This document shows, in pieces, positions 1,659 to 12,142 of a DNA stretch of 64,000 nucleotides. Made by a program: the position numbers and the translations under genes. How positions within the stretch are numbered: the first letter of the stretch is position 1; every line of letters starts with the position of its first letter. Source of the DNA: Phaeosaccion multiseriatum (taxonomy: Eukaryota; Protista; Ochrophyta, other classes); contig OZ218953.1 in the NCBI GenBank assembly GCA_965112735.1, positions 248,001 through 312,000 of the forward strand. The letters run 5' to 3'. The notes under the pieces were generated by a model. It was given only the letters and a program-made list of their open reading frames with translations, had not been told where the DNA came from and searched no databases.

Positions 1659-3602
1659 TCAGCCCGCCTCTGCACCGTGCGCATTGCTTCTCCGCTGCCC
1701 CGTGCCCAGGTTGCGTTTCACTCGCTGCTTACTCTGACTCTCCACGCTCGCCAAGGCTCGCTGTAAAGCCGCCAGGGAGGGCCGAACGCCACTGAACTTG
1801 GGCTTCTCTCGTCCGTGCGGCTGACGTGCCCCGCTCCCAGGAGCCCTGCCTCCGAGCGGTGAAGGCCCTCCTCCTCCTCCTCCCCCTCCCCTCATGCGCT
1901 GGCGGTGGGCGTTGTGGTGCGACCCGATCTTCGCGGCTGCACTCGTGGCCGTGCTCTCCGGTGCCCTCCTTCTCCGACTGCTGCTGCTGCTGCTGCTGCT
2001 GCTTCTGCTGGCCTCTTCTACGGGCACCCCTGCGATCTTCCTGAGGAACGTCACACCCTTCATGACTCTCTGGACGGCGTGTATCCGGCTGCTGTCCGTG
2101 GCCATGAGCCCGATTACGCCTCCCGCCAGACTGTGCGGACATTGCACAGAGGTGAAGAGAAGAGCAGTTGTTTGAGTGTGGCCCTCTCCCACAGTAGCTA
2201 GTACGGTGCGATTGCATACCTGTTGACGAGGGTGAAGATGGTGCCTGTTCTGGAGTGGAGGTCGAAGGAGACGCCTTCCATACGGCAGAGCTTGAAGAAG
2301 GACGCGTGCCGTACGGTGCACAGCCCCGGATGGTGTATGTAGTCCACGTGCACGTAGTGATTCGGCCCGGCCTGCCCACCCGCCCTCGTCGCGGTCTCCG
2401 CCTCCACCCCTGCAACCCCCTGCTGCCCTCCGACCGAAGCACCCGTCAGTACGCTGAGCGCAGAAGCGATAGCCGGCCCCCCTCTCCGGTCACCGAGCGG
2501 CCCCGCCCCGCCCTCTCCGGCCGCAGAGGTCTCGCTGCGGGACAACGCCAGGAAGAACATATGCGAGCAAGCGGGGCGGCTGAGGAAGAGCTCTACCCCA
2601 GTGCCCCAGAGCCGCTCCGTGCTTCTCTTGGCGTCCCAGAAGGCGTCGAAGTACACGCTCACGTATCCCATCACGCCCTTGGCGGACAGGGCTTTGCCCA
2701 TGGCCACTGCGGCGCTGCGGAGGGCCCCGCTCGGGACGGCTTGTTGGGGGTACATTGAGCCCACTCGTGCGTGGTGCTCGTCCACAAGCAACTGCGTGGT
2801 CACATACACACGTACACAGCCACACACACACACACACGCGCGCGCACATCGCCTGAGACAGACATTCTTGGAGCAACGGCCCCGCAAGGCCCCTTCCGCC
2901 CTCCACACCTCTGACGCACCTCTGCCTCGCTGAGCACCTCGACGCCTCCCTGTGGGTCAATGAGAAGACTGGCCATGGGGCGGCCCAGTAGGTTCGGCGC
3001 CTGCGCTTCGATCACACCCCCCATGCGCATCATGTGGCAGTGGTACTCGCGCCAGCTGCTGTACACCTCAGGACAGCACACCACGGCACTCCTGGGAGAG
3101 AGTGAGGTCAGTCGACGCAAGCGTGTGCGTGTGAGGGTGAGTGGAAGAGAGGGTGCCGTGCTTTCGGACTTCAACTCACGTGGAGAGTCTCGCAGAGAGC
3201 TCTTTGAGGACTCTGGCTCTGACTTGTAATTGCACCTCCGAGCTGTTCCACGTTTCCACTGCACCGTCTCTCTGCAGCAGGGGGGGGGAGGGGGGGGGGC
3301 GGATCAGCTTGTGGGTTGTTCTTGTTAGCGGTACGTAGACATGCAGGACTTACGGCTTGTCCGTTGAGCAGAGCAGCTTTCTCCTTCCTCAGCTGCTGTA
3401 TACACGGAAGCTCATTCACGTCCAGGTACGCCACACCGCGGTGCTCAAACGCAATGTCGATGCGGAAGATCCACCGCTGAAGGGGTCACGAAGGATTTGG
3501 TAAGAGGGGGCTGTACGGGACGTGACGGCACGTACGCACACTCACACACAGACACACACACGCACACACACTCACACACACATACACACACACACTCACT
3601 CA

Positions 3603-3679
<77 letters not shown>

Positions 3680-6092
3680 GCACGTCGACGTGTCCTGCCA
3701 CGAGCTTGGTGAGCGCCACCAAGAAGCCCTTCTCGTCGTAAATATCATGGCAGCCGATGGGCACGTTCACGTCGGCCCCTGCGAAGACTTTCTTGGTCGC
3801 GCTCACCGTGGAGAGCGCCTCGCACACGGCAGGGTCGGCAGAGAGCAGGGGCAGGCGCAGTGCGAGGGCCAGTCGCCGCTCCTGCCAGCCCACCAGACCA
3901 GGCACGATGAAAGCCGGCCGACCCTTCACGAGGGTGGCGATACGTGCCATGGCCTGCGACGCGGTGGGAGACGGAGGGAGCTCACAGTCAGGGCTACGTC
4001 ATCGGCACACCATCTCTGCTTGGTGTGGAGAGGGAGAAGCTTACCCGGGGCGAGTACAGCAGGAGAGACGCCAGAGGCAGGTGGGCAGGGAACAGACTGT
4101 GATGCTCAGGCACCACGACATGCAGGCGGTGGGCCACCCCCTCCACCCCGGCCAGCTCCAGGATCTTCTGGTGGTATTGCAACACGGCCTGCGGGAGGGG
4201 GCTCGGCGACACATACACCACGTGCGTGTTCTCGTCTTGCGCCAGGGTGGAGAGGCGCGAGAGCTGTAGGTTCTGCACAGAGTCGAAGTTGCGCTCTCCG
4301 AGGCGGAAGGCCTCGTCCATGGCCAGCGAAGGGAGGTGGACAATCACCTTCTCCTGTGGGGATGGACACAGTCGGCAGGCGGGGCCGTAAGTAGAAGGGT
4401 AGTGCGCCTGCCTCTCCACGCTGCACCACCGCACCTTGTGTTGGCTCAGATCAGTCCAGTTGCTGCGGAGGCTGTCCTGCAGGCTGCTCCACTCCTGTGC
4501 AGCGGTTTCCTTGTCCAGCTGGAGCAGCCACGTGGCCCTCACTCGCCCCAGATGACCTCTGCTCAGCGCCTGTATGTACGTCGCCGCTATCCGCTGCCGC
4601 ACATGAGCTTGAAATCTCCTGAGGCTGATGTACCGCCGCATGCACGCCTGGATAAGGATGGCTGCCGCTGCTTTCCGCTTGAGACCCGGCTGAGGCATGC
4701 GCAGATGCTTCAGGAGAGGCTCCACCTGGTGGGGACAAGAGAGGTGTCACGGCGTCACGGAAGGGAGACGAGCATGCGTGACACCGAAAGGGGAGAGAAG
4801 TACATTAACTGCATGCATAGACAGTCTGGAAGGCCATATCGATCACCCACTTGGTCGATGTTGGCCACGGTGCTGAGTACAGTCTTGACGTCCAGGCGCT
4901 CCATGTCGAAGGAAATGGCCTGCGCCAGCTTTCGTCCGTCGATAATGGCCATGGGCACCTTGTTCCTCTTCATCAGGCTTTCCAGCATGGACGTGCATCT
5001 ACAAGGCGCAGAGGGGAGGAGAAGCCTTGAGGAGGGGGCTAGCCCTGCCTCAACCTGTGTCGTCCTTCTCACCTGGAAATTGAGCCCCAACAGTCTGCGT
5101 AGGTTCTCTGGAACGAGGCGAACTCGGGTGTCTCGTGGACGATCTTCCCCTTCCAGATGATGAAATGGTGCAGAGAGAACTCGTCCAGGAGGTCCAAGTA
5201 ACCGCGAATCTGGTCCATTTCGGTCTGTGTCAAGAGAAGGAGGACGAGGAGAGAAAGTGAGAGGGCGAGCGAGTTGTTGGCGGGATGGAGGGGAGACCCT
5301 TTCCACACAGACCTTGACCAGGGCCTCCGAGGAGGAGACGGACACCTCCGTAGAAGCTCCTTTCCCACTGGGTGCTGCTCCGTCCAGGGCTTGTTCGAGG
5401 GGGGGCGCATTCTGAGCCGGACTATCTGACAGCGTGGGGGGGACTGTCGCCCCACCTGCCGAGTCATGCCCCTGCTGTTGCTGGTTCGCATCACAAGCTT
5501 CCTCGCCTGCGCCGGTGGGGTACATAACTTTTTCGGACATGTCATCTCCGCTGTCGTGGCAGTCGCTCAGCTTGTCGCTTCGGTCGTAGTAGTCTCCCTT
5601 TCGCTGCCCTCGAGGAAGGCCACCCTCGGAATCGCCGTCATCGACACGTGTGTCATAGCGTGCCACGGCATTCTGGCCACTTCCCGTCACAATCCGACCC
5701 GCCGATGCCTTCGCTGCGGCACCCAGGGTACCATTCACGAGCGCTACAGCCCCGTGCTTGAACGATTGCCGCATCACCTGCTCTGAGAGAGCACATGATG
5801 GGTCGGCCTGCTGCTGCTCCTGCTGTTGCACCGCACTATTGCGCTGCTCTCTCAGTCGGGCCATGCTCTGCCGTCTCCCGCTTTTGCCAAAGATTTTTTC
5901 TTTCCTAAGCGAGCTGTTGTGTCTTGGCTTGGTCGCCCCTTCCCTGTCTCTCGCGTTGCGGTGGGCGTCGCTCCGCTGCGGGTCTGTCGGCGAGCTATTG
6001 CCTTGCAGAGGAAGGGTGCGAGGTACTTGATCGAACAGATCCACAGCGCCCTGCTGCTGCCGCTGCTGCTGACGCGGTGGGTCGGGCGGCAT
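1659..6092 (-). CDS. IQCH: IQ motif-containing protein H (IQCH)-like, multi-exon
   Basis: Exons encode LLDEFSLHHFIIWKGKIVHETPEFASF, IQ motifs (AAAILIQACMRRY, AATYIQALSRGHLGR), VIVHLPSL...QNLQLSRL, HVVYVSP, WIFRIDIAFEHRGVAYLDV and GGVIEA; these blocks match my recollection of the IQCH family. The start (MPPDPP at 6092) is approximate. Confidence 0.8.
3536..3677. repeat. (CA)n microsatellite in an IQCH intron
   Basis: Near-pure CA run immediately adjacent to an exon boundary. Confidence 0.95.
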
Positions 6093-6849
6093 CCCCACTC
6101 TCCCGTGCCGGTAGGCCGAGATGTGGTTGAAAAAAAGAAAACGAAACTGTGAGGCACCGCCATCTGTGAGGTCGCGCGCGCTCAAGGAACTCAAACTCAA
6201 ACTTGTGGCGGGGGTATTTTTCCCTTTTTTCTTTTTTCTTCTTTTTTTCCTTCGGGCCAGCCCTATTAAGCACGATATTCGCCTTTTTTCTCCGTCTAAT
6301 AACATTAAAAATTATAATCGCTTTAGGTACAGACAAAAGCTAAAGGATTGTCTACGATAATATATACTTCGCCGAGTGAACCAATCATTCGGCACTAATC
6401 CAAAACAAAAATTGTGCAGAGCCTCCGATCTCTGCACATAGGGCTGGCTCCTGCTCCTTTGGTTCGCTACAACCCTCCTTTCCACTGCTGCGCTTGCAAG
6501 AAAATAGCCCATCGCAAGGAGGGGGGTCTATGTTGGCTTTTGGTGCTGTGCGATAAAAGGGAAATTGCGGCCGCTCTCCCGGCTCCTCTCCTGGACCGAA
6601 AGGCGGAGAGGAAGATGGGAGATTGGGAGTGAATGCGAACCTGCTGCTCTACCCCCTGCTTCCCAAGAAAGCAAGGCGCCTATGAGTCGTTGCTCCGGGG
6701 TGGTGAGTAGAGAAGTTGGGTACTGGAAGGGTCCCTGCCGGGGTACGAAGGGTCCAACCCACCGTCACCCACCAGCCTGCCGTCCCCCGACCCGTCCATC
6801 CCCCCGCCACTGGTAGGAGCCGTTCTTGAGTTCTCCACCCCTAGTGGCT

Positions 6850-9800
6850 TCGAAACAGACGACGACGTATCCTCAGCGGCTGTTGGAGCAGAGGTTGGAG
6901 CATCGGTTGTTGCCGTCGATATCGTCTGAAAAAAGAAGGAAGAATCAGGACAAGCAAAGCATAGCGTGAGACAGCAAAGTCCAGTTTGCGCACGTCCAGC
7001 CAGGGGTCAGCCTCCGTCGAATTCCGTCGAATTACCAAGGCACACTTCGGAGGACAAGACATGGGTGGCCCAAGGAAATCACTCTCATTAACACCTACCT
7101 CCGTAGGCGCCGCTGTTGTCGGAGCTGGCGTTGTTGCTGCTGTTGGTGCAGCGGTGGGTGCCTGGCGAACGGAGAGGACACAGAGAATCGAGAGTACGAG
7201 TAAAAGACAGGACGGGGGGGGAGGGATGGATGAATGGATAAGAACACATGAAAAAAACACAGAGAGCAAGCTGGAAGGCCAGCCGCATGAGTACCTACCT
7301 CCGTAGGCACCGCTGTTGGAGCTGCTGTTGGGGCTGCTGTTGGCGCTACTGTTGGTGGAGCGGTTTGGGCCTGACAGAAGAAAAAGAGGGGTCACAAGAT
7401 GAGTTTTTTTAGTCATAAACCCCGCAAAAATATCAGCAGGCGGGCTCAACAGCGATGTGCTCAACAAACATCTGCGTCAAGCCTCAATACACATGTTCAA
7501 ACGAATCAACACGTCAGAGCCGAGGAGGATGGGCCCAAGGCAAACAGCACCGTCGCGTACCTCCGTTGGAGCCTCCGTTGGAGGCTCCGTAGGAGAAAGA
7601 GTGGGAGGTGATGTGGGTGGAGAAGTCGGCCGAGGAGTACGAGGGGCTCGCGTTGGTTGAGTGGTCGGTGCCTGGCGAAGGGAGAGGGAAGACAGAAAAG
7701 ACAAGAAAACACCCGAAAGACAAGGCAGGGGCATGGGGCGAGGGTGAGTGAGTGAGTGCACCAGTGAGTAGCGCCAACCAGCCCAGAGGCAAGTATCCTC
7801 CGGATACCTACCTCCGTAGGAAAAACAGTAGGCGGATTGATTGGTGGAGAAGTTGGTGGAGAAGTCGACAGAGGGGTGGGAGCTCTTGTGGGGGGTGATG
7901 TTCGCTCAGGCGTAGGAGGAGTGGTGGGAGCTCTTGTGGGGGTTGATGTTGGCACAGGCGTGGGAGGTGTGGTGGGAGCCCTTGTGGGGGGTGATGATGG
8001 CACGGGCGTGGGAGGAGAGGTGGGAGCCCTTGTGGGGGGTGATGATGGCACAGGTGTGGGAGGAGAGGTGGGAGCCCTTGTGGGGGGTGATGATGGCACA
8101 GGCGTGGGAGGAGAGGTGGGAGCCCTTGTGGGGGGTGATGTTGGTGAAGTGGTCGGCGGCTAGCGAGGACAGAAACGATAGAGCAAAGAGGGGAAGCGGA
8201 ATGGTTTGAGACAGCCACAGCAGGCGGGGGTGAGTGAGGGAGTGAGTGAGTGAGTGAGTGAGCCGCAGCAGGGTCAACCAGCCCCAACCAGCCCAAGGCA
8301 CGCATCCTCCCGAGCTTACCTCCGTAGGAAGAGGAGTAGGTGGGTTGGTTGGTGGAGAAGTCGGCCGACGAGTACGGGTTGCCGTCGGTCGAGGGGTGGG
8401 AGCGCTTGTAGGGGGCGATGTTGGCACAGGCGTGGGAGGAGTGGTGGGAGCCCTTGTGGGGGGTGGTGTCGGTGAAGTGGTCGGCGGCTGGCGAAGGGAG
8501 AGGGAAGAAAGAAACGAGGAGAGAGTAAGCGGAAGAAGGAAGGGGAATGGATTGAGACAGCCGCATGAGCCGAGGGTGAGTGAGTGAGTGAGCGAGTGAG
8601 TGAGCAGCAGCAGGGTCAACCAGCTCCAGGCAAGCATGCTCCCGAGCTTACATCCGTAGGAGGAGGAGTAGGTGGGTTGGTTGGTGGAGAAGTCGGCCTA
8701 CGAGTACGGGTTGCCGTCGGTCGAGGGGTGGGAGCGCTTGTAGGGGGCGATGTTGGCACAGGCGTGGGAGGAGTGGTGGGAGCCCTTGTGGGGGGTGGTG
8801 TCGGTGAAGTGGTGGGCGGCTGGCGAAGGAAGAGGGAAGATAGAAACGAGAAGAGAGTAAGCGGAAGAAGGAAAGGGGATGGATTGAGACAGCCGGAGGA
8901 GGAGGTGGCAGGACAAGAATCTTACTCCATGAACGAACACTACAAGCAGGGATGTGCACACACACACATACACACACACACACATAGCAACAGGACGAAA
9001 CGGATATAATCGCTACAACTCTGGACGCAGGGCTTTGTCCAACACTTACTCGCGTAGGCGCCACAGTCGGAGGCCGCGTAGGTGCCACAGTCGGACGTCG
9101 CGTAGGCGGGACCGTGGGTGGCTGAAGCGACACAGACAGAGGAGGCACATCAAGGCGTTACTACCCAGCGTGGCACAACGCAACTCCCCCCCACACAGCG
9201 GAATGCACACACCAGCACCGAGGTTCGGGCCCTTCACACACACTCACACTCACGCATATACACACACAGGGAACGGATCCAATCGCTCTAACGCAGAGTG
9301 AGAGCAAGGCTTTGTCCAACACTTACTTGGGTAGGCGGCACAGTCGGAGGCCGGGTAGGTGCCACAGTCGGAGGCCGCGTAGGTGCCACAGTCGGAGGCG
9401 GCGTAGGTGCCACAGTCGGAGGCCGCGTAGGTGCCACAGTCGGAGGTGGCGTGGGCGGGACTGTGGGCGGCTGAAACGGCACAGACACAGGAGGCACGTC
9501 AAGGCGTTAATACCTAGAGCGCTGCACGAGGTACAAGACAACTAACTGTATTCGATCCCCGAACACAACTCTGCAAAAAAAGGGCCAGACAGCGGGATGC
9601 ACACAACAGCAAGCAGCACCTCCTCCCCTCACCCCATGAACGGACACTACAAAAGGATGCCCCGCCATGCACACACATCTTGCTACTTTGGACAGCACAC
9701 CGATGGCTCTCAGTCCGTAAACAACAGCCAATACTAACTTGAGTAGGCGCCACAGTCGGAGGCCGCGTAGGTGCCACAGTCGGAGGTCGCGTAGGCGGGA

Positions 9801-10145
9801 CCGTGGGTGGCTGAAGCGGCACAGACAGAGGAGGCACATCAAGGCGTTACTACGGAGTGTTGCAAGACGTAAAACTGGAAGGGATGCATGCACACGCCAG
9901 GAGAGGCACGAGTCGAGGTTCACGCCCTTACACACACGCATGCATACACACACATCGGACAACATACTGGAACGAATTCAATCGCTCTCACTCTGAGCGC
10001 AGGGCTTTTGTCCAAACATACCTGAGTAGGCGGCACAGTTGGAGCTCGCGTAGGTGCCACAGTCGGAGGTGGCGTAGGCGGGACCGTGGGTGGCTGAAAT
10101 GGCACACACACAGGAGGCACGTCAAGGTGTTAACACCCAGAACGT

Positions 10146-10188
<43 letters not shown>

Positions 10189-11091
10189 CATCACACACAT
10201 ACACATGTGCGACCGGAACTGAGCCAGTCGCTCTCATCTGAGCGCAGGGCTTTGTCCAAACTTACCTGAGTAGGCGGGACCGTGGGCGGCTGAAACGGCA
10301 CGAGACAGAGGAGGCACGTCACGGTGTTAACACCCAGAACGCACACACGCACAAACACACACACACATATGTGCGACCGGAACGGATCCAATCGCTCTCA
10401 CACTTTCGCCTAAAACTTACTTGAGTAGGTGCCACAGTCGGAGGTGGCGTAGCTGGGACCGTGGGCGGCTGAAGCGGCACAGACAGAGGAGGCACGTCAA
10501 GGCGTTCAGAAAAGTGCATTCGAGGCTCGAGCTCACTCCGCCAAAAAAAGGCCGAGAGAGGGGTGCACACACCAACAGCAGCAGCTGCAGAGTGTAATCA
10601 CACCAGGCTGGGTTGTTTCACCACACACACATGTACCAGACCACAGGAAGGAACCGATCCAATCGCTAAAAGTGAGAGCAGGGCTGTGCCTAACACTTAC
10701 TCGAGTAGGCGTCGCAGTCGGAGGCTGCGTAGGCGTTGGAGTGAAGAAGCTGGAGACTGCCCGGTGCATCTCCCACTGCGCCGTCATGCGCTCCGTCTGC
10801 ATCGCAGTGGGGGAGGGGGGGGGGGGGGGGGTGAGGTTGCGCGCAAGGATTTTCGGCGGCGTGTCTTTGTTGCATAATACCTGTCCTGGCGTGAATTTGG
10901 ACCGGCACGCGTCGTAGCTATAGTCCATGTGGTTGTCTATAGGGTCATAGCCCGGCATGTTTGGACATGTGTCCATCAGTAGATTTGGACTGCCTGCGGG
11001 GCAGTACCCGCCCTGGTTCGCTTCAGCTTGAGCGGGGGTGTCGGCCACCAAGTCGCCTTCCGCGGAGCAGCCTGCTCCAGGGGGAAGAGCG

Positions 11092-11139
<48 letters not shown>

Positions 11140-12142
11140 GAAGCAGCAGCAGCGGCGGCGGCGGCAAGGGGTGAAAAGGGGCCCGACAGTGGGAGCGCAC
11201 AACGCACAACTCAATGCCGGGGGCGTGCATGGCATGCCTAACTCACCTCCATCCCACGTGTGATATAAGCCCATCCAGTGCCCCACTTCGTGCGTTAGGA
11301 TGCCGCCTGAGGGGGAGGACGGCATGTGGGTCAGAACGAGACGCAAGAACAAAAGCAGATAGATTCCCCATCGTTCTGTTGCTGTCGCTCACCTTCGTCA
11401 TACGCGGCCTCGTACTCTCTACGGCCGGGTAGAGTCCGGTAGTTGATGAGAACCAAGTCCTCAAAGGGCACCGTGGCACTCCCTGAGGGTTGTTATGGAG
11501 AGAAGGGGGCTGAGTGAGCATATGAGAAGTGTGGCAGAGACCAAGACAAAAGACTCGCAGGCACTCACCCGGCTTGTTGACAGTCACGCCCAGGTAGTCC
11601 AGGTCCTTCACAATCACGTTCAGCACGTGCCCCGGCGTTACCGTATTGCCCACATTGAACCGCCCTAACGAGTCCAATTCTGCCGCCGCGCTGAAAGCGG
11701 CGTCATCTGCGACGCGGTACGTCTCTAGCAGATTGAAGGAGAAAATGCCCGCAAAATCCGCGTTCAGCACGGCCACCTGGTCAGCAATCTCCTGCGCGCT
11801 CACCCATCCCAGCTGTCCATCGCTGGCCGTGACGGCGTGGATGTTGAGATCGACCTGAATCGATGACTGCAGCTGCCTATTGTTTGACTCCCTGTTGGCG
11901 CTCTTCCGATAGGTTTGGTACTCCTCCATCTGCCTCATTTCCTGCTCGCGCTCTTCCGCACTCGCTGGCCTGAAGTTGCAGATGGTGCTCTCTGGTGCCT
12001 GCCCCTCCCGCTGGAAGAAAAAATCTGAGCTTTCGCGGAAGGCCCCCAGGTGGTGCTGCACCTCGCGATGCCCTGCTACTCCCGAGAGCGGCCCCCCTGC
12101 GGCCACCACCACAGAGAACAAACATTCAAGCCGTCTCTTCAT
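6850..12142 (-). CDS. Secreted M43 (pappalysin/ulilysin-like) zinc metalloprotease with C-terminal Pro/Thr-rich mucin-like stalk
   Basis: N-terminal signal-like segment MKRRLECLFSVVVAAGG. Zinc motif THEVGHWMGLYHTW (HExxHxxGxxH), followed by DLVADTP and the Met-turn NHMDYSYDAC...FTPGQ. Many small P/T exons follow. The last exon starts at 6925, but the 3' end is uncertain. Confidence 0.88.
7099..10468 (-). repeat. Tandem array of duplicated exon-intron units encoding PPTV(A/P)PT and PTRAPTSPPT repeats
   Basis: Twelve small exons. Six share a near-identical acceptor region (consensus ...AACGCCTTGAYGTGCCTCCTCTGTCTGTGCCGCTTCAG). Two 168-nt exons (8320-8487 and 8652-8819) are near-identical together with their flanks. 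Confidence 0.9.

Follow-up and report, generated by a model that had tools for sequence, protein, structure and literature searches.

A Probable Secreted Pappalysin-Type Metalloprotease Gene of Phaeosaccion multiseriatum with a Pro/Thr Tail Amplified as Exon-Intron Cassettes

Introduction

How does a secreted enzyme come by a long Pro/Thr tail, and can the length of such a tail be adjusted? The question is raised by a gene in a 64,000-nucleotide (nt) stretch of the genome of the ochrophyte Phaeosaccion multiseriatum (contig 4, positions 248001-312000; hereafter the window, to which all coordinates refer unless another contig is named). In this gene, the catalytic domain of a putative M43 zinc metalloprotease is followed by twelve small exons that code for Pro/Thr repeats. 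The original prediction regarded these exons as a mucin stalk that positions a secreted protease, with a length that could be set by alternative splicing or by unequal crossover.

On the basis of the sequence, we estimate at about 0.7 the probability that the gene is intact and codes for a secreted zinc metalloprotease of the pappalysin type (MEROPS M43B-like), probably made as a zymogen, with a Pro/Thr tail of ~470 residues that was amplified as cassettes of exon plus intron. In the following, we present the evidence for the cassettes, the identity of the enzyme and the nature of the tail, and weigh the alternative explanations.

Methods

The genome searched comprises 67 Mb in 22 contigs, and the source material is one haplotype of one strain. 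Exon borders were set by locating junction strings and by bookkeeping of the phase, the minus strand being read from 12500 to 3000. The family, database and PDB searches of the protease were run exon by exon, and the donor-side intron ends of the first cassette family were compared in MAFFT alignments.

Gene Model

The protease gene lies on the minus strand at 12142-6680 and consists of 18 exons and 873 codons, starting with the ATG at 12142 and ending with the TAG at 6682-6680. All 18 exons are open and have canonical GT-AG borders, and a stop codon is found in frame 20 codons 5' of the ATG, with no other ATG between the two. The exons and arrays, with the twelve small exons labeled S1-S12, are the following.

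11569-12142, minus strand: exon E1, 574 nt, phase 0 to 1; ATG, hydrophobic leader, pro-segment and N-terminal half of the catalytic domain
11393-11482, minus strand: exon E2, 90 nt, phase 1-1; GT-AG borders
11247-11306, minus strand: exon E3, 60 nt, phase 1-1; zinc-binding motif HEVGHWMGLYH
10881-11071, minus strand: exon E4, 191 nt, phase 1 to 0; contains the Met-turn NHMDY with the Tyr after it, as well as the S1' Asp and FTPGQ
10701-10796, minus strand: exon E5, 96 nt, phase 0-0; TERMTAQWE, which closes the catalytic domain, and the tail's first proto-units (TPTPTQ PPTATPTR)
9050-10468, minus strand: family-1 array, S1-S6 with their introns
10421-10468, 10266-10289 and 10022-10093, minus strand: S1, S2 and S3, with 2, 1 and 3 units of 24 nt
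9739-9810, 9327-9470 and 9050-9121, minus strand: S4, S5 and S6, with 3, 6 and 3 units of 24 nt
8820-9049, minus strand: hybrid intron between S6 and S7, the join of two arrays according to the alignments
7561-8819, minus strand: family-2 array, S7-S10 with their introns
8652-8819, 8320-8487, 7812-8159 and 7561-7671, minus strand: S7, S8, S9 and S10
7299-7370 and 7099-7161, minus strand: S11 and S12, generic linker of the type APTAAPT...PTE
6680-6925, minus strand: last exon, 246 nt including the TAG at 6680-6682; short Thr/Ala/Pro start, then a unique hydrophilic end

The coordinates, lengths, translations and phase 0 given in the original prediction for the twelve small exons proved to be exact, all of them being flanked by AG and GT and open in frame 0; in the order S1-S12 they measure 48, 24, 72, 72, 144, 72, 168, 168, 348, 111, 72 and 63 nt, all multiples of 3. 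With the upstream exons modeled (phases 0 to 1, 1 to 1, 1 to 1, 1 to 0 and 0 to 0 for E1-E5), the phase on entering S1 is 0, and it remains 0 to the stop codon. E5 (96 nt), S1-S12 and the last exon (246 nt) thus form a run of 14 consecutive phase 0-0 exons, from which, as had also been pointed out, any subset of S1-S12 could be removed without a frameshift; this is a matter of simple arithmetic.

The introns of the gene are short, with 84-268 nt overall and 131-268 nt in the array. Between E5 and the last exon there are 13 of them, not one with a length that is a multiple of 3, and several contain in-frame stops; the Pro/Thr frame therefore needs their removal, and retention of array introns would break it.

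The junction between E4 and E5 (...FTPGQ / TERMTAQWE) is validated by its collinearity with FTAGQFERMVAQWE, which is uninterrupted in an M43 paralogue on contig 13. By the same collinearity, it is the spliced form at the E4-E5 intron that is conserved. The intron itself (10797-10880, minus strand) is 84 nt long, a multiple of 3, and has no in-frame stop by reading; its donor, GTATTA, is unusual, and it includes a long poly-C run. Its retention would place 28 additional in-frame residues close to where the catalytic domain ends. The segment LINYRTLPGR..YDE of E2 is likewise collinear with ISYKTLPGR..YDE of the contig-13 paralogue. The intron between E3 and E4 holds a long (CTG)n/(GCT)n trinucleotide tract (11095-11190, minus strand).

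Cassette Families

The first six small exons are built, as the original prediction held, of 24-nt units coding for the octapeptide PPTV(A/P)PT(R/Q/P), and the introns 5' of them are similar at their 3' ends: the last ~45-50 nt are common to all and 70-92% identical without gaps, S2 being offset by an indel of 1 nt. The units are position-specific. The exons open with CCRCCCACGGTCCC... and continue with CCTCCGACTGTGGCACC..., while the final unit closes in CAA or CAG in S1-S5 and in CGA in S6 and E5; S2, with its 24 nt, is a hybrid of a first and a last unit. On the donor side, the introns after E5, S1-S3, S5 and S6 have their first ~55 nt in common, the intron after S4 being divergent there. 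The intron middles are variable and contain a (TG)n microsatellite. Since the intron after E5 already bears the family-1 5' end and E5 itself ends in two proto-units, family 1 grew out of E5.

The segment S3-intron-S4 is collinear with S5-intron-S6 through exon and intron, at 83% identity, and the sole large gap in the alignment is one of 72 nt, the length of the three internal units that S5 has in addition. The introns after S4 and S6 have a further core of ~33 nt in common. Taken together, these two observations indicate that the last step in the growth of family 1 was the duplication of a two-cassette block with breakpoints in the introns. The exact runs shared within the family are 36-42 nt long among S4, S5 and S6 and 17-42 nt for most of its units.

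Family-1 sequence, introns included, is found nowhere else in the 67-Mb genome. Within the window, the 24-nt unit is matched 9 times when as many as 3 mismatches are allowed, and the 30-nt motif of the acceptor 4 times; shuffled sequence is expected to give 0 in both cases, which puts the repeats well outside chance. All of the matches fall inside the array, and no orphan or inverted cassette units were found elsewhere in the 64 kb.

Family 2 comprises S7-S10 and, more weakly, S12, and has other units and other intron ends than family 1. Over 249 nt that include the intron, S7 and S8 have units with 96% identity; 4 of the 168 exon positions are different, one stretch of 114 nt is exactly the same in both exons, and Tandem Repeats Finder (TRF) reports the pair as a 332-nt period in 2.1 copies (8192-8895). 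In S9, the same program finds an internal 48-nt unit in 5.7 copies at 7871-8144. The intron between S6 and S7 has a 5' part and middle of family 1, resembling the intron after S4, and a 3' part of family 2, and it therefore marks the join of the two arrays.

Two further claims of the original prediction are borne out by these comparisons. The existence of two cassette families follows from the different units and the different intron ends, and the joint duplication of exon and intron from the shared intron ends, the collinear S3-S4 and S5-S6 blocks and the 96% identity of S7 and S8 through their intron.

Linker Cassettes Elsewhere in the Genome

The acceptor end of family 2 together with its exon start (...CCCTTCGCCAG followed by GCACC...) recurs elsewhere in the genome, and the acceptor end of S12 belongs to the same genome-wide family. 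In its linker form, the cassette has an intron ending in ...TTCGCCAG and an exon starting with GCNCCNAC. Of a 16-mer that runs across the acceptor, the 67 Mb contain 4 exact copies, every one at the start of an exon coding for Ala-Pro-Thr (APT); by our own arithmetic, chance would give ~0.06, and the reversed control is found once.

A DNA search with S12 and its intron end located such junctions on contigs 2, 7, 9 and 13, and a profile of eight acceptor regions, built from sequence only, gave at least 14 further places on contigs 2, 3, 10, 13 and 15, with 150 of ~18,000 candidates scored. All 11 of the profile places inspected are introns followed by phase-0 exons of the APTAAPT... type, and where the next donor is visible the exons measure 105, 57 and 48 nt, all multiples of 3. 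At each of the 14 family-2-type junctions read outside the protease gene, the shared intron end stands next to the same APT exon start (14/14). Over the last 30 intron nt, family 2 is 67-77% identical to the cassettes on contigs 9 and 3, compared to a mean of 40% for control acceptors from the window; in addition, a 14-nt string, CCATTCCGCTTCCC, is common by eye to the contig-3 intron and the intron between S8 and S9. The host genes of these cassettes are unrelated. The pattern fits a spread of the APT linker exon, with part of its intron, by exon shuffling.

One of the host genes, on contig 9 (3582001-3592000, at 3340-4900 of this segment, plus strand), codes for a secreted protein with a Somatomedin-B domain (35 bits) and a PPC-like domain; its two APT linker exons are split by a cassette-type intron and followed by a long acidic poly-Glu region. 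On contig 6 (1135785-1136437), many overlapping matches to S12 occur without interruption, which looks like a long single-exon array of the APTA type. On contig 7, two near-identical copies of an APT-linker exon, each accompanied by the upstream intron and the neighboring exons (~1586500 and ~1445300), lie 140 kb apart in opposite orientation, with 97% identity over the last 30 intron nt and nearly the same text in the flanking exons; we take this pair to be a recent segmental duplication of a stalk-bearing gene.

The growth of the tail can be reconstructed as follows. The genome-wide APT linker cassette supplied family 2, and E5, through its 3' end and the intron after it, gave rise to the private family 1. 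Whole cassettes were added by tandem duplication whose breakpoints lie in the introns, the latest such events being those that gave S7/S8 and the S3-S4/S5-S6 block, and slippage or unequal exchange inside exons altered the number of 24-nt or 48-nt units. All of the exons would be spliced constitutively, and the length of the tail would come from germline recombination and not from regulated splicing.

Protease Identity

The M43 catalytic domain that had been placed upstream of the array is recovered in the present analysis from the zinc-binding motif, the Met-turn and the matches to mirolysin and ulilysin. The HEVGHWMGLYH of E3 fits the extended zinc-binding pattern HEXXHXXGXXH, which is the metzincin motif (PMC6949598). 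In a phmmer search of E4 against the PDB, mirolysin is matched with an E-value of 2.5e-5, ulilysin with 2e-3 (2.1e-3) and pappalysin-2 with 0.8, and the segment NHMDYSYD of E4 aligns column by column with NYMDYTYD of mirolysin. In the latter enzyme, Met284 is the residue of the Met-turn, Tyr286 the switch Tyr and Asp289 the S1' Asp, which confers on pappalysins the preference for Arg/Lys at P1' (PMC6949598). E4 retains all three of these residues. We also considered a reading in which the Met of the Met-turn is replaced by Arg; it was rejected, the mirolysin numbering placing the Met-turn at the M of NHMDY, which is conserved.

E1 begins with a hydrophobic stretch that, by eye, is a putative signal peptide, and it shows 33% identity to the contig-13 paralogue (E-value 2.2e-14). 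Compared to the unicellular pappalysins ulilysin and mirolysin (M43B, PMC6949598), which are archaeal or bacterial and have no mucin-like tail, the present protein has such a tail, a very divergent N-terminal half, and Cys-Asn in the place of the Cys-Gly switch.

The genome contains two M43 paralogues, both of which keep their Pro/Thr linker in single exons, so that not every Pro/Thr linker in this genome is split. The paralogue on contig 13 (90001-100000, at ~2211-5702 of this segment, plus strand) has its catalytic domain in ~4 exons. One open reading frame (ORF) of it carries a Pro/Thr/Ala stalk, a hydrophobic stretch that resembles a transmembrane (TM) segment by eye, and a basic tail, and a proprotein-convertase P domain is detected with 21.7 bits (cut-off 21); it has the look of an anchored counterpart within this enzyme family. 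The other M43 paralogue, on contig 5 (3978001-3988000, at ~4200-6593 of this segment, plus strand), carries downstream of its catalytic part, in one ORF of 437 codons, PPTLAPVTVT repeats and three Cys-rich modules that end in ...CRFCGF, with Pro/Thr linkers between them; the modules have no match in Pfam.

Tail and C-Terminal End

The tail, from the end of E5 through S12, amounts to 470 residues when counted exon by exon. Its composition is 39.6% Pro, 27.2% Thr, 9.4% Ala, 6.6% Arg and 5.7% Ser, with 31 Arg and no Lys; the acidic residues are almost confined to the exon ends, and the net charge is positive. As a long Pro/Thr/Ser tandem-repeat region in a putatively secreted protein (the leader being judged by eye), the tail is mucin-like, and by analogy it is probably heavily O-glycosylated. 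A Pfam search with the large tail exons gave only a sub-threshold match to "PT repeat".

The last residue of the tail exons is Gln or Arg in family 1 and Glu or Asp in family 2, and this matches the exonic side of the donor, which reads CAA, CAG, CGA, GAG or GAT before the GT. In our reading, it would be the splice signal that dictates the residue at the exon end.

The last exon codes for a unique, non-repetitive, hydrophilic and slightly acidic end of 81 residues, for which neither a Pfam match nor a paralogue in the genome was found. From 6925 to 5900, no 19-residue window in any frame has a Kyte-Doolittle mean above 1.6, that is, there is no segment resembling a TM helix or a glycosylphosphatidylinositol (GPI) signal. 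With no anchor at the far end, the Pro/Thr region is a tail rather than a stalk, and the idea that it positions the protease as a stalk does not hold for this gene; a TM-like stretch is seen by eye in the contig-13 paralogue, which the idea would appear to fit. The protein would accordingly be described, from its sequence, as an unanchored secreted enzyme with a long tail. A glycosylated, cationic tail studded with Arg would hold the enzyme in the extracellular coat, for example on anionic polysaccharides.

The Arg residues are regularly spaced as PTR along the tail (exons at 7099-10748), and the generic APTA cassettes read elsewhere in the genome have few or none. As the enzyme is predicted to cleave before Arg/Lys, it is conceivable, by analogy, that it cuts and trims its own tail.

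Alternative Explanations

A number of points weigh against an intact gene for a secreted pappalysin with a cassette-built tail. On E4 alone, PF05572 reaches 13.2 bits, short of the cut-off of 23, as the domain is divided among four exons; no single exon reaches the cut-off. The pro-segment in E1 has a single Cys (TICNF), followed by Asn and not by Gly, whereas the cysteine switch of the family is a conserved Cys-Gly (PMC6949598) and the contig-13 paralogue carries one (YCGA). Among 1.84 billion representative proteins, neither E1 itself nor an ortholog of it was found: phmmer gave only 12 weak matches, the best with an E-value of 5.5e-8 and some of them carrying PF05572, and therefore neither the protein nor a close ortholog appears to be present in the public protein collections searched. 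E1 had no match in the PDB or in a word-index protein search either, and when the family-1 acceptor/exon junction was looked for as an exact pattern in metagenome contigs, 0 matches resulted. The signal peptide, the O-glycosylation and the binding to the matrix were judged by eye or by analogy. As to the cassettes, the similarity of their intron ends between genes is short (~30-70 nt) and pyrimidine-rich, and part of it could be convergent.

We have considered four alternatives. In the first, the tail is tunable by recombination and under selection, the number of cassettes being polymorphic and adaptive for the reach or the retention of the enzyme. That the array has seen recent events is evident from S7/S8, with 96% identity and the 114-nt run, from the duplicated two-cassette block, from S5, which equals S3 plus three extra units, and from S2, collapsed to one hybrid unit. 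The SmPoMuc mucins of Schistosoma mansoni, which have the same architecture, vary from 1 to ~20 copies between genes and individuals (PMC2576457). Unequal crossover, which the original prediction had named as a route of length change, is indeed credible in view of the exact runs of 114 nt in S7/S8 and 36-42 nt in S4/S5/S6, the block duplication and the gain and loss of units, and the array itself demonstrates that such exchange has altered its length in the past. Today the exchange is physically plausible between S7 and S8, with 114 identical nt, and less plausible for the remaining units, where the runs are 17-42 nt. Adaptive tuning is nevertheless an unlikely explanation, since most family-1 units are poor recombination substrates with exact runs of only 17-42 nt, any copy-number polymorphism could be neutral, and, the tail having no fixed end, the distance it spans would be of no consequence.

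The second alternative is the splice-tunable stalk, in which regulated skipping of the 12 symmetric exons would yield isoforms with different tail lengths, as in the PEVK segment of titin. Each skip among the 14 phase 0-0 exons from E5 to the end keeps the frame, S2 is just 24 nt long, and two donors are off consensus (GTTAGT after S4 and GTACGC after S10). The symmetry of the exons is, however, fully explained by their inheritance from a genome-wide phase-0 cassette, and the splice sites are for the most part strong and nearly the same, six of the donors being GTAAGT and the pyrimidine tracts being long. Short introns favor intron definition, under which exon skipping is rare, and the array introns (131-268 nt) are of this kind. 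In titin, it is regulated exon skipping that sets the length of PEVK, and the introns of that organism are long. With introns of 84-268 nt in the whole gene and ordinary splice sites, and with no RNA or protein evidence of skipping found in the collections searched, alternative splicing as the determinant of tail length finds no support here, and we regard it as quite improbable.

A decaying pseudogene, or an assembly artifact of a collapsed or expanded repeat, is still harder to maintain. The locus is highly repetitive, and neither a homologue nor a transcript was found in the public data searched with E1; on the other hand, none of the 18 exons is interrupted or lacks canonical splice sites, the reading frame runs through 873 codons, no catalytic residue is lost, and the repeat copies, at 70-96% identity, are different enough for unambiguous assembly. 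Finally, introner-type mobile introns inserted repeatedly into a once continuous Pro/Thr exon, a scheme to which the highly conserved ends and variable middles of the family-1 introns and the presence of the family-2 acceptor end in many genes would lend themselves, can be dismissed as barely credible: the family-1 introns are unique to this gene in the 67-Mb genome, the family-2 intron end is paired with the same APT exon start at 14 of 14 outside junctions, so that intron and exon travel together, the first, internal and last units keep to their positions, which shows that exons were copied whole, and the block alignments continue through exon and intron alike.

Comparison with Known Systems

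For a tail amplified as exon-intron cassettes, SmPoMuc is the closest precedent. There, a 27-nt mucin exon and its flanking introns form tandem genomic repeats of ~1 kb with microsatellites between them; the copy number varies, and both ectopic recombination and alternative or aberrant splicing are documented (PMC2576457). The two systems share a tiny mucin-type exon (27 nt there, 24-348 nt here) repeated in tandem with its flanking intron, dinucleotide microsatellites between the repeats ((GA)n there, (TG)n here), units that are kept similar, and the number of repeats as the variable dimension. They differ in that the SmPoMuc units are ~1 kb long, more than 93% identical and part of a multigene family, whereas here they are 155-510 nt long, 70-96% identical and of two families, with multi-unit exons in a single gene that is fused to a protease and known from one assembly.

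The analogy to brown algae drawn in the original prediction is apt. In the Ectocarpus genes of the ROCO and the NB-ARC-TPR type, one leucine-rich repeat (LRR) or tetratricopeptide repeat (TPR) is encoded per phase-0 exon, often of 72 nt (as for the LRR exons of ROCO), and the exons are shuffled (PMC3341825). An ochrophyte host, runs of symmetric phase-0 exons produced by duplication or shuffling, conserved splice sites and the same type of exon in many loci are common to both cases. In Ectocarpus, however, the exons encode folded repeats of intracellular candidate receptors, while here they encode the disordered tail of a secreted enzyme, and the orphan or inverted exons documented in introns there have no counterpart in the window.

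Titin PEVK (PMC6469411) resembles the present tail in being a long, extensible, low-complexity, proline-rich segment made by many small duplicated exons that can be removed with preservation of the frame; the short introns here are a difference that argues against skipping. The secreted mucins of vertebrates (PMC13345508) likewise have a Pro/Thr/Ser tandem-repeat domain with a length set by the number of repeats, and in the human ones the variable number tandem repeat lies in one large exon (PMC13345508), whereas here it is cut into 12-14 exons by co-duplicated introns. A link between phase symmetry and protein disorder is known as a general trend in human genes (PMC3632108).

Neighboring Sequence

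An AT-rich spacer, by reading, separates the 3' end of the protease gene from the start of the next gene, which lies 3' on the same strand (3000-6110, minus strand) and has a Gln-rich N-terminus and a region with an IQ-like motif. One of its introns is filled by a (TG)n microsatellite of ~150 nt (~3540-3690).

Conclusions

The locus alone reveals no new mechanism; building from cassettes is a known way of making such tails and is common in this genome. It does provide a clean, readable record of how a disordered, mucin-like segment grows, by duplication of cassettes and by expansion of units inside exons. It may also be of help in gene annotation, where arrays of 24-72-nt exons are easily missed.

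What is new here is that the acceptor end of family 2 and the APT exon start recur at no fewer than 14 other places in the genome, and this portable, genome-wide linker cassette is the more interesting lead. A cassette shared with many genes of one ochrophyte can serve to study, outside animals, both exon shuffling and how phase symmetry relates to disorder. One may go further and speculate, although we hold it to be rather doubtful, that there is a genome-wide pool of portable phase-0 APT cassettes, each a short Pro/Thr/Ala exon moving together with the end of its upstream intron, exchanged among unrelated secreted-protein genes by ectopic recombination, of which the M43 tail would be one product, amplified privately, its regularly spaced Arg residues gluing the enzyme to anionic wall polymers or serving as Arg-P1' cleavage sites for the enzyme itself, in the manner of a self-releasing tether. 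If this were true, the APT pool would be a working exon-shuffling system outside animals.

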